From Perkinsus chesapeaki ATCC PRA-425 (taxonomy: Eukaryota; Protista; Perkinsozoa), in contig JAAPAO010000203.1 in the NCBI GenBank assembly GCA_013115145.1, forward strand, positions 1 to 53,197: DNA of 53,197 bases, given 5' to 3'. The notes beneath the pieces are model-generated. The model made no database searches, was not told the origin of the DNA, and saw only the letters and a program-made list of their open reading frames with translations. Of the stretch, positions 15,320 through 18,533 are shown one piece after another. Every line of letters begins with the position of its first letter. Position 1 is the first letter of the stretch. The translations under genes were made by a program, and so were the position numbers.

Positions 15320-16605
15320 ACCTTTGACAACAAATTTTAGGATTTCATCTTCTACAGAATCCTGTTGTGCAATGCAGTGGGGCAAGGTGGAGACACTTGT
15401 GGTGTGTAAAGTGAATGGTAGCGCCATGTTGAATAGCAGTGCTCTGAGGGACCGTTTGAACTCAGAAAGAATCTCTCAAAATCTGATGTATAAGCTTGAC
15501 TTAATAAGGTGCTGCAAGAATCCAAAAGTGTGATCCTCCTTATTATTAGAATTAATACTCATATCAGGTTTGGATTACAAATATGGTATCAGTTTTAATT
15601 CTAAGGAGCGTTTGATGCCCCGTGTGCGTCCGTACCGAAAATAAAGACCAATAAATACACCCAACCGAAAGTACCGTTAGATCGGTGAACCCTTTAGTAT
15701 AAGAGTAGCGGTACAGTTGTCCGAGGACAAGTTAATATCGTTACACCTCAGAGCCATGCTCTCATGAGACTGGTAGGATGTCACTGTTACTGATTAATAC
15801 CACTGACCTCGCAGTATAATGGGAAGTTCCAGAAAAACGTGTTATTTGCAGATGACTATGTGGAGTAACAAAAGTTGAAATATGCTAGACACTGTCTATC
15901 CCATATGAGAAGTTCTCTCGTTCAACAACTTGAACATTGTTCTACTTTATCTCAATGAGAATGGTTTGTGTACCTGATATGTGGCGTGTAAGGCCGCTAC
16001 TATTCGCTTGAACGCCTGCCAGCGCCGAATGTGTAGATGTACGGGCGACCACATGTCCACAGGAGGGTATACTACTCGCGAAATTGATTCCTCAATCCGA
16101 CACCTACCGTTATATTGATGTCCCTATTCGCGGAAATAGCGAAATAGATTTCTGAAAGGTATAAACCACTTGTCGAGGAGAAGTTATCAATAGTGTCGAT
16201 GATGGAACTTATGTCGACCGTCTGACCGTGCTCATCTGCCATTATAAGTGTGTCACAGAGTGGAAGGCAATCCGCTGTATATCAACTTGCATATCATACA
16301 ATAGGACTTCGACGTTATATGACTTATGTAGATCTACACCATTGCGGACTATCTTTGCAATTCCATCGAAGTTTATTTTCTGCAGTCTGCACCGCATTGT
16401 GCATTTCTCTCGCAGCGATGTTACGTTCCCCTACCGACAGGTCCGCCTCGATGCTCTCAGTCGAGCTTATACAAGACCCGCATCCTCACCGGAAGTCTTA
16501 GATACAGTCAATATTTACTGCAACTTTGATGAACACAAGAACATGTTCCTGGCTTTCAGAGCTGTAATAGACGACTGGCATTCACAGTACCACATCCTTA
16601 TATAA
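15320..16605 (+). CDS. Possible multi-exon hypothetical protein
   Basis: Scattered short protein-like exons with splice signals; last exon QVRLDALSRAYTRP...DDWHSQYHILI*. No family recognised. Confidence 0.3.
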
Positions 16606-16680
16606 TTTAGGACCTCACAACCTGGTTCGACACAAACAAATCTACTCCACCTTGTGACGGTGAATGGATGAAAAAGGGTA

Positions 16681-16733
16681 CTCAACTGTCAGCAACAACG
16701 ATAAGCTTTCTCGTTGTTACTTCATTCGTCGAG
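16681..16733 (-). promoter_or_regulatory. SECIS element in the 3' UTR of the 17957-16854 gene
   Basis: Minus strand: CTCGAC-GA-ATGAA-GTAACAACGA-GAAAGCTTA-TCGTTGTTGC-TGAC-A-GTTGAG. Helix I 6 bp, AUGAN/NGAN non-Watson-Crick quartet, helix II 10 bp, apical loop with unpaired AAA. Confidence 0.9.
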
Positions 16734-16853
16734 ATATAATGCATCATATTCGGCATAAAGATACTATTGACTGACATTGGGATAACTCAGCGTACTTGAC
16801 TGTACGTAAGCTGAAATTGTGCTGCAAGAGCACGAGGAGGGGGGATCTTTTAT

Positions 16854-17957
16854 TTACACTTTATCAGATGAGCCTCCTCCACAACACTTGGCTCGGCATC
16901 CAGCCCAGCAGCCGCGCCAGTTAAGACTGCGGCACTGGGTGGCGAGTTTGCGAGGCAAACTGGTATACCAGGCTATCGATACGAACATCAAGATGTACCC
17001 TAGATACGTGAGGATAATTGTGAAGAATATTCCATAGAAGGAATATGACCCATCAGAGTTGTACCTGAAATGACATTAGCGTTACAGTTACTGAGCAAAC
17101 TTACATCGACATATGAACGCCTAAGGCATTCTCTTCAACCACTTGCAAAGGCCCGGCGCCAAGATCGGGACAAGTCCCTTCTTTGCCTTGTGCAACAGAG
17201 GCCACTTGATAAACACAGCTCCCAAGGTGGAACTTGTACTGCTTACCAGTAGCAGCTGAAACGATGAGGGTCGAGACAATTGAGAAATATGCGGACTTAC
17301 GATCGATAAGGTACCAGTTGACGGCATCCAGGAGAACGTGGCGGAGCAAGTCCATCATAACAGCCACAGTGGCCACTAGTATCATGTAAAAAGGGCCCCA
17401 TTTCCTAATGTGGGGTTTAACGTTTTTGCGTTTTCTTTTTGTACCAATAAAGACCTGGAGAACGTATGTCGGCCAAAGGGGAACATTGCCTTACAAATTG
17501 GCAGAGGTTAGTAAAGACAGCAAGGGTAAAGCCGAATGTGATAGAGTGCGAGAAGCCATTGAGCCCCGCGGAGCTCGCCAGGCCAAGGAGGCCGAGGACG
17601 AGCACAGGCCAGCATCAGGATCCGACCTGACCAGATGTTAGCGCGCTACGGTGAGATGAGATCTTACCAACGCCGGAATTGATACTAGCATGACCAGAAA
17701 TGAAACGATAAAGGACTTCACAGCGCTGCCCTGCGACACCTGGGCAAACATGTTGATAAAGTACCCTTCGGGGAAATCCTACCTCACTGGTGTCAGCAGA
17801 GGGAATCTCGTCCATCAGCACCTGCTTGTCCTCAGGCTCCTGTCATTCATCACACTCTTCAGCATCGGGCCTACTCTTATCGCCTGTAAAGGATATGAAA
17901 GTGAGGACCTACGTGAACCCCCTCCCTACGTAGGTCCTCGTTTACTTCTTGGGGCAT
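16854..17957 (-). CDS. Candidate selenoprotein: 282-aa multi-pass membrane protein with Sec23 (CDEU) and Sec71 (GSUCWP)
   Basis: Exons 17957-17930, 17883-17783, 17739-17668, 17626-17495, 17454-17301, 17255-17105, 17064-16854 total 849 nt. Six GT-AG introns of 40-46 nt, all phase-consistent. In-frame TGA at 17845-17843 and 17617-17615; TAA stop at 16856-16854; SECIS downstream. Confidence 0.85.
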
Positions 17958-18533
17958 CTAAATAACTTGCTTTCTATGAGCTTGTAAGGGTCAACTGTCC
18001 AACTAAAAACTACGAGGAATAACTCGCGCCAACCACGATAGTAAAGATATGCTTCATCACCCGAGTTACTTTTTAATTCGCTAAAGCAGCCAAGAATCTT
18101 GCACGCATGTACTTAAGGATACGCATGCGCTTTTTAACGCGGACTTCCCATGTACTGTATGCTCTGCCATCTGAAGAGTCTGTTCGCAGATCAAGTTATT
18201 TAATATAAAACAACAGCGCTTGAATACACGGCAATATCCAGTTACACTCAGAATGACCCTTTCCTTATACTAAAGGACGCACCAAGTAACAGGACATCAT
18301 ATCGCACGCGTGCACAATACCAACACAACGTTGACCGTTTCATTAAACCTTTCCCTTTTTCTGCCCCTCTATTTGACTTGTCTCTTGCATACTTCTTTTT
18401 AATATGTTGATCCGCACTATGGACAACACAACACCAACTAAACCAATGTAACTGCCACTTTGTATCCAAGATCCGACACCATTGTACGTTTATAGCAGAT
18501 TACAATTAACTCGCTTCAATTCACTTAACAAAA

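Follow-up and report, generated by a model that had tools for sequence, protein, structure and literature searches.

The window analysed here, a 53,197-nt stretch of the Perkinsus chesapeaki ATCC PRA-425 genome (contig JAAPAO010000203.1 of assembly GCA_013115145.1), contains on its minus strand, at 17957-16854, a gene that is very probably the P. chesapeaki orthologue of MSP ("membrane selenoprotein"), a five-helix membrane protein with two in-frame UGA codons predicted to specify selenocysteine (Sec). The prediction that the gene encodes a two-Sec protein is almost certainly right. An initial annotation of this locus, made from the nucleotide sequence, had described a multi-pass membrane selenoprotein with two UGAs and a selenocysteine insertion sequence (SECIS) and had assigned it to a new selenoprotein family; the gene described there stands, and the new family does not.

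We rebuilt the gene independently from the raw sequence and obtained seven exons and six introns, identical to the structure first proposed (six GT-AG introns of 40 to 46 nt in a 283-codon frame). The introns all begin with GT and end with AG and measure 46, 43, 41, 40, 45 and 40 nt, and the coding sequence of 849 nt (283 codons including the stop) specifies a product of 282 residues with a Cys-rich C-terminal tail, CRSLNWRGCWAGCRAKCCGGG. The two in-frame TGAs that had been reported were confirmed as codon 23 (...AEECDE-U-QEPEDK...) and codon 71 (...SIPALVGS-U-CWPVLVLG...), and the terminal stop codon is a TAA at 16856-16854. The features of the locus, all on the minus strand, are as follows:

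17958-18009: 5' untranslated region (UTR), 52 nt, preceded by the trans-splice acceptor AG at 18011-18010 (RNA contig X3 record 10)
17930-17957: exon 1, with the ATG at 17957-17955 (rebuilt model; junction 17930/17883 in RNA)
17783-17883: exon 2, acidic N-terminal tail with C20-D-E-U23 (rebuilt model and RNA)
17843-17845: TGA codon 23, predicted Sec in the CxxU motif (kept in an mRNA contig; TGA also in loci L001, L004 and L005)
17668-17739: exon 3, transmembrane helix (TM) 1, ending ...SIPAL (rebuilt model, RNA, hydropathy)
17495-17626: exon 4, VGS-U-CWP, TM2 and TM3 (rebuilt model, RNA, hydropathy)
17615-17617: TGA codon 71, in the MSP signature PALVGS-U-CWP (kept in RNA contigs X3 record 10 and X2 record 9)
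17301-17454: exon 5, basic loop and then TM4 with WGPFY...DLLRHVLLD (rebuilt model, RNA, BLASTP)
17105-17255: exon 6, clade-specific loop with C176 and C191 (rebuilt model, RNA, profile and alignment comparison)
16854-17064: exon 7, TM5, Cys-rich basic tail and TAA (rebuilt model, RNA, BLASTP)
16621-16853: 3' UTR, minimum extent by RNA (X1 record 1, X4 record 11, depth table)
16681-16733: SECIS element (fold, pattern scan, covariation, covariance model)

To place this model on transcripts, contigs of public RNA runs were positioned on 16400-18300. All six junctions were present in these contigs exactly as modelled, and no alternative junctions were found there. One contig (X3 record 10), from a spliced-leader-primed marine metatranscriptome, spans 17493-18011, has introns 1-3 spliced out and shows no difference from the genome over the region of the two TGAs; the second TGA is likewise unchanged in X2 record 9. 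The 5' end of X3 record 10 continues into TGAGCCAAAATGGCTACGG, the reverse complement of a dinoflagellate-type spliced leader (SL), and this joint identifies the trans-splice acceptor and the short 5' UTR listed above. In addition, the Perkinsus-type leader GTAGCCATCTTGGCTCAAG, which matches the Perkinsus spliced leader PmaSL1 (PMC3101222), was present as a loose end in X1. RNA coverage runs beyond the stop codon and through the SECIS to at least 16621, and the mRNA is thus not polyadenylated upstream of the SECIS. The RNA check suggested in the initial annotation therefore came out in its favour at every junction and across the 3' UTR, and neither of the transcript forms it had named as contrary evidence, transcripts that lose the TGAs or that end in poly(A) before the SECIS, was found in these contigs. 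Altogether, the gene is transcribed, SL trans-spliced and cis-spliced, and its mRNA retains both UGAs and one SECIS hairpin. X3 record 10 terminates in a T-run soon after it enters exon 5, where the genome has the A-rich stretch ACAAAAAGAAAACGCAAAAAC (region 17440-17493), which looks like internal oligo-dT priming and not like a true poly(A) site.

Since exon 5, the in-frame intron 5 and exon 6 form a stop-free stretch, they could be used together as a search query. A HMMER search with this query against 1.84 billion representatives returned a small family, nearly all gene models of which begin just past the position of Sec71, which is the usual sign of truncation at a UGA. At the nucleotide level, the TGAs are kept. 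A genomic locus whose gene matches the P. marinus protein P0039 (L001) reads ...EDEECDE-TGA-QEPDEK... and ...GS-TGA-CWP... and carries a SECIS; the cDNA contig of the closest relative (L004) holds both TGAs in a single continuous frame, with a SECIS; and a further cDNA contig (L005) has both, in EDCAT-TGA-EAPP and SIPALLGA-TGA-CWP. The intronless loci of a metagenomic eukaryote (L002 and L003) read SIPALIGS-TGA-CWP, have a SECIS and use TGA as the gene's own stop. Both TGAs are thus conserved in L001, L004 and L005, and at least the second in L002 and in the more distant L006; the initial annotation had named TGA at these positions in homologues as support. In the distant MSP clade of L006 and L007, no N-tail TGA was visible in the portion of the transcript covered. 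L002 also has an in-frame ATG-GCA-TGA (MA-TGA-SMPP..., TGA at 2860-2862), 43 codons upstream of its Sec codon; this TGA probably precedes the true start, the next Met, and the L002 homologue most likely has one Sec.

The SECIS-type hairpin lies at 16733-16681 on the minus strand and starts 120 nt past the TAA, as had been estimated. Helix I pairs CUCGAC with GUUGAG, the internal loop holds AUGA on the 5' side and GA on the 3' side, i.e., the AUGA/GA quartet of eukaryotic SECIS elements, and helix II has 11 bp (layout CUCGAC-GA-AUGA-(11 bp)-loop-(11 bp)-GA-CA-GUUGAG). The apical loop of 9 nt, GAAAGCUUA, contains an AAA that begins 12 nt after the AUGA, within the 11 to 13 nt at which the unpaired AA(A) of SECIS elements is expected; this spacing is 12 nt in L002 and 12-13 nt in L001 and L004. 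When both strands of the window were scanned with a custom SECIS pattern, the hairpin was the sole match, against a chance expectation of approximately 0.1 matches per window in first-order Markov simulations, and a covariance model built from this element and its three homologues (L001, L004 and L002) matched nothing else in the window. Across the four loci, compensatory double changes were observed in 7 of the 13 helix pairs, and the GAAUGA and CUGA(C/U)AG cores are invariant. One result weighs against this assignment: the Rfam SECIS models gave no match at E≤10 in 16300-18300 and none at the gathering score in the whole window, where Rfam otherwise returned weak snoRNA-like noise and one tRNA only. 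Rfam SECIS seed sequences are mainly metazoan; we take the miss as a limit of those models and not as evidence against the element, and the comparative evidence outweighs it. A tRNA-Asn (GTT) at 47104-47176 on the plus strand was the sole Rfam/ARAGORN match in the window.

A second transcript, approximately 89% identical to the gene and probably derived from a paralogue or a divergent allele or haplotype, was found in the same public RNA runs (X1 and X2; region 16903-17567). Its 29 listed differences lie in exons 4, 5 and 7; none of them changes an amino acid in the model frame, and 27 fall at third codon positions. Its exon 6 is too diverged for placement at 85%. Its 3' UTR is unlike that of this gene except at 16680-16733, which is the SECIS (X4 record 12, with a joint from 16733 to 16903). 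Wholly synonymous differences together with a 3' UTR match confined to the SECIS indicate that purifying selection acts on the frame past the two TGAs and also on the SECIS.

The identity of the protein follows from comparison with MSP, which was described by Lobanov et al. (2007, Genome Biol 8:R198) in Ostreococcus, Chlamydomonas, Volvox and Dictyostelium (PMC2375036). Sec lies in PALVG(S/A)-U-CWP in all 5 published MSPs (variants SIPALVGSUCWPVLI, LPALVGSUCWPLL and PSLVGSUCWPLL); the green-algal proteins are without an N-tail Sec, and the Dictyostelium protein has two Sec residues, and 75Se labelling revealed a band of its expected size (PMC2375036). In the supplementary alignment of that study, D. 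discoideum MSP reads ...GEDCEGGVU-ARPEDE... in its N-tail, then ...SIPALVGSUCWPVLIASLSG...AHSLTFAITLSILSNLAQY... and ...FGPFYLTATAVPLATFDILRHILVD..., with FGPFY...DILRHILVD and a last helix ...FTYTG..L..GTIWAADL (PMC2375036). In the window protein, the MSP motifs follow one another as they do there, and its two Sec positions are arranged as in Dictyostelium. Its TM3 contains FTNLCQF and its TM4 WGPFYMILVATVAVMMDLLRHVLLD (GPxY...D..RH.L.D), in columns that are invariant or nearly so across 25 sequences. The initial annotation had likened the TM4 pattern to an uncharacterised protist TM family; the likeness was real, and the family is MSP itself, which had already been described.

Profile searches gave the same answer. 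An alignment of this gene's clade (A1) was compared by hhalign with an alignment of the classic clade (A2), which includes P0034, a protein that NCBI and UniRef list as "membrane selenoprotein [Heterostelium album PN500]"; the two profiles matched with a probability of 99.87% and an E value of 1.7e-31 over 149 columns. In BLASTP against P0034, exon 5 matched at 2e-10 and exon 7 at 6e-06, and a chain of matches leads from the window to P0010 (3.4e-4) and from there to P0034 (4.6e-38). The P0034 model itself is without the VGS-U-CWP...AG segment and jumps from SIPAL to GFAHAITF, which shows that even annotated MSPs are mis-spliced around the UGA. No Pfam family was matched by any exon or by the exon 5-intron 5-exon 6 stretch, a null that is uninformative because MSP has no Pfam model, and an ESM Atlas feature search with exon 5 was likewise uninformative (best score 0.71). 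Thus, the signature, the profile similarity, the TM3 and TM4 motifs, the multi-pass membrane layout and a transcribed 3'-UTR SECIS were all found in this gene.

The Perkinsus protein and the classic MSPs share (I/L)PALVG(S/A)-U-CWP between TM1 and TM2, TN(L/I)xQ in TM3, GPxY...D..RH.L.D in TM4 and a final TM with T(Y/W)xG(F/Y)xL...W, besides their multi-pass nature and the 3'-UTR SECIS. With Dictyostelium MSP it shares also a further Sec, placed in the acidic tail at the N terminus and followed by xxPED, although the tail motif is CxxU in the window protein and CxxxxU in Dictyostelium. It differs from classic MSPs in the loop between the last two helices, which in the Perkinsus clade is approximately 30 to 40 residues longer (an hhalign gap of 28 columns). 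This insert has predicted beta strands, two conserved Cys residues and the motifs F.F..C.Y ... C ... GP..V..ENALG...SMYN.DGS, whereas classic MSPs have a short YRPGC....CLS loop at this position. The clade with the insert comprises Perkinsus species and other eukaryotic relatives. The Cys-rich basic C-tail of this Perkinsus subgroup is a further addition to the classic MSP core.

We then looked at how the gene is represented in public databases. A search with the C-terminal piece of the closest relative led to P0037, i.e., FOL47_003379, a "hypothetical protein" of P. chesapeaki of 255 residues. This model avoids the first TGA by reading exon 1 on into intron 1 (...DLRREGVH) and rejoining just past the TGA (EPEDK...), and it reads exon 4, with the second TGA, in the wrong frame (SDPDAGLCSSSASLAWRAP...). 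The RNA junctions contradict it, and the expectation that standard gene callers would mishandle this gene was therefore borne out, with both TGAs dodged by unsupported junctions. The P. olseni model FOZ62_007751 leaves out the first TGA together with the whole of exon 4, and the P. marinus model Pmar_PMAR009614 (153 residues) starts at a Met within TM4. None of the three models carries a selenoprotein annotation, and in the literature surveyed we found no description of MSP in Perkinsus. It is the avoidance of UGA by gene callers that has left the Perkinsus models cut short or wrongly spliced. On the minus strand, 17903-17939 holds a perfect 12-bp inverted repeat with a 13-nt loop (GAGGACCTACGT at 17939-17928 and ACGTAGGTCCTC at 17914-17903). 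It straddles the boundary of exon 1 and intron 1, and folding into a hairpin would hide the GT of the 5' splice site (17929-17928), the site through which the public model reads; the repeat is not obviously conserved in L001, the locus matching P. marinus.

Kyte-Doolittle hydropathy gave five hydrophobic spans, in agreement with the five or so TM helices first estimated. The net charge is -12 in the N-tail, +8 in the TM3-TM4 loop and +6 in the C-tail. Under the positive-inside rule, these charges predict a cytosolic location for the basic loop, the C-tail and the U71-C72 turn and an outside location for the N-tail and the Cys-containing loop. An AlphaFold model was made for the residues of the closest relative that follow Sec71, using the 25-sequence alignment. 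It reached a predicted local distance difference test (pLDDT) score of 82.7 and a predicted template modelling (pTM) score of 0.68, with three long helices of pLDDT above 90. In a search of the AlphaFold database (AFDB) clusters, this model matched unnamed family members only. Within the alignment, polar residues are invariant inside TM3 (N and Q) and TM4 (D, R, H and D), and this conservation points to a putative intramembrane active or binding site.

CxxU and vicinal Sec-Cys pairs are classic redox motifs, and characterised selenoproteins are mostly oxidoreductases. With the SECIS expected to recruit SBP2, eEFSec and Sec-tRNA, both UGAs should be decoded as Sec, which puts Sec23 in a C-x-x-U motif on the very acidic N-terminal tail and Sec71 beside Cys72 in the tight TM1-TM2 turn, inside the family signature PALVGS-U-CWP. 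Tentatively, and at less than even odds, we favour the view that MSP is a membrane-bound thiol/selenol oxidoreductase. In such a mechanism, the U71-C72 pair could cycle through a selenenylsulfide, much as the Cys-Sec pair near the C terminus of thioredoxin reductase does; invariant polar residues within the membrane (TN..Q in TM3 and D..RH...D in TM4) could assist it, and the CxxU tail could act as a second, mobile redox centre. The Gly-Cys-Sec-Gly centre of thioredoxin reductase likewise has adjacent Sec and Cys, for which an eight-membered selenenylsulfide ring is chemically possible, and it serves here as a working analogy only: the order in MSP is Sec-Cys and not Cys-Sec, the pair would be at a membrane helix-helix turn and not on a flexible soluble tail, MSP is without a flavoprotein domain, and the two proteins are related neither in sequence nor in fold. 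VKOR, DsbB and DsbD/CcdA offer a conceptually similar layout, in which a small helical membrane protein carries a redox pair at the edge of the membrane and a further pair on a flexible stretch; they differ in that no similarity in sequence or fold to MSP was found, in Foldseek against the PDB or in VIA-align.

Several observations speak against an oxidoreductase. In L006, the Sec codon (TGA at 137-139) is kept in FIGS-TGA-AWQ while the vicinal Cys is replaced by Ala. The post-Sec71 model gave nothing below E 1 in Foldseek against the PDB (best E 1.5, rhodopsins, TM-score 0.17) and only generic bundles (catenin, talin and BAR) with Z≤7.6 in the wide VIA-align search; this model leaves TM1 and both Sec sites outside. 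Moreover, the positive-inside rule would put the N-tail CxxU on one side of the membrane and the U71-C72 turn on the other, contrary to a direct exchange between them.

A rival function, which we hold to be rather unlikely, is that MSP is a membrane transporter, channel or sensor that binds a soft metal or a selenium or sulfur species and is not a redox catalyst. Ligands would come from Sec and Cys, from the residues invariant within the membrane (Asn, Gln, Asp, Arg, His and Asp) and from the Cys-rich tail. The polar and charged residues invariant within TM3 and TM4 are consistent with such a site, as are the dispensability of the vicinal Cys in the L006 clade and the lack of a thioredoxin-like or other known redox fold among the structure-search results. 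The Cys-rich tail would also suit binding, but it is restricted to this Perkinsus subgroup. The redox character of CxxU and U-C and the prevalence of oxidoreductases among characterised selenoproteins count against it. In addition, a survey of algal selenoproteomes places MSP among the families found almost only in Sec form (PMC7539508), which fits catalysis better than binding.

A different objection concerns the meaning of TGA itself. The TGAs might not encode Sec at all, being either sense codons (e.g., for Trp) or leaky or true stops in a pseudogene or in a gene for a 22-residue peptide. In a syndinean Amoebophrya, all three stop codons reportedly encode amino acids (PMC6394959), and the homologues from Perkinsus and its closest relatives in which a stop was read all end in TAA or TAG, so that the use of TGA as a stop is not directly shown for this genome. 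In one automatic gene call (P0004), the second TGA appears as W, but the genomic sequence of L001 has a TGA there, and none of the six Trp residues of our model is encoded by TGA. In a stop-release test on the open reading frames of the window, which is a weak test, freeing TGA lengthened the frames no more than trinucleotide frequency predicts, in agreement with the standard code. Further points against this objection are that a conserved, covarying SECIS lies downstream; that the two positions are Sec in the MSPs of Dictyostelium, Chlamydomonas and Ostreococcus, the Dictyostelium protein having been labelled with 75Se (PMC2375036); and that the differences of the second transcript downstream of both TGAs are synonymous without exception, which places this part of the frame under selection. 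We therefore regard a meaning other than Sec as very improbable. Least of all can the gene represent a new selenoprotein family with no ties to those already known: the absence of a Pfam family and the "hypothetical protein" records for the gene and its Perkinsus relatives had left room for it, but the signature motifs and two-Sec layout in the published MSP alignment (PMC2375036) and the hhalign match to named MSPs refute it, the Pfam null reflecting the lack of an MSP model.

These results open no new selenoprotein class; they add to MSP a new member that is mis-annotated in public databases, and they extend the range of this family to Perkinsozoa. The public gene model FOL47_003379 is corrected, and the P. 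olseni and P. marinus "hypothetical proteins" are likewise recognised as truncated or mis-spliced. The two-Sec layout, so far found in Dictyostelium, occurs also in an alveolate, and the N-tail Sec is thus either ancient or recurrent. It is conceivable, and in our estimate distinctly improbable, that Perkinsus and its relatives have an MSP subfamily of their own, so far undescribed, with a beta-rich and probably disulfide-bridged outer-face loop and, in some members, an ancestral N-tail CxxU. If the topology given by the positive-inside rule is true, Sec would be present on both faces of the membrane, and the protein would be a two-centre transmembrane selenol relay unlike any characterised selenoprotein. 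In practical terms, an expressed and conserved gene in a culturable organism provides a well-supported entry for assigning a function to MSP.

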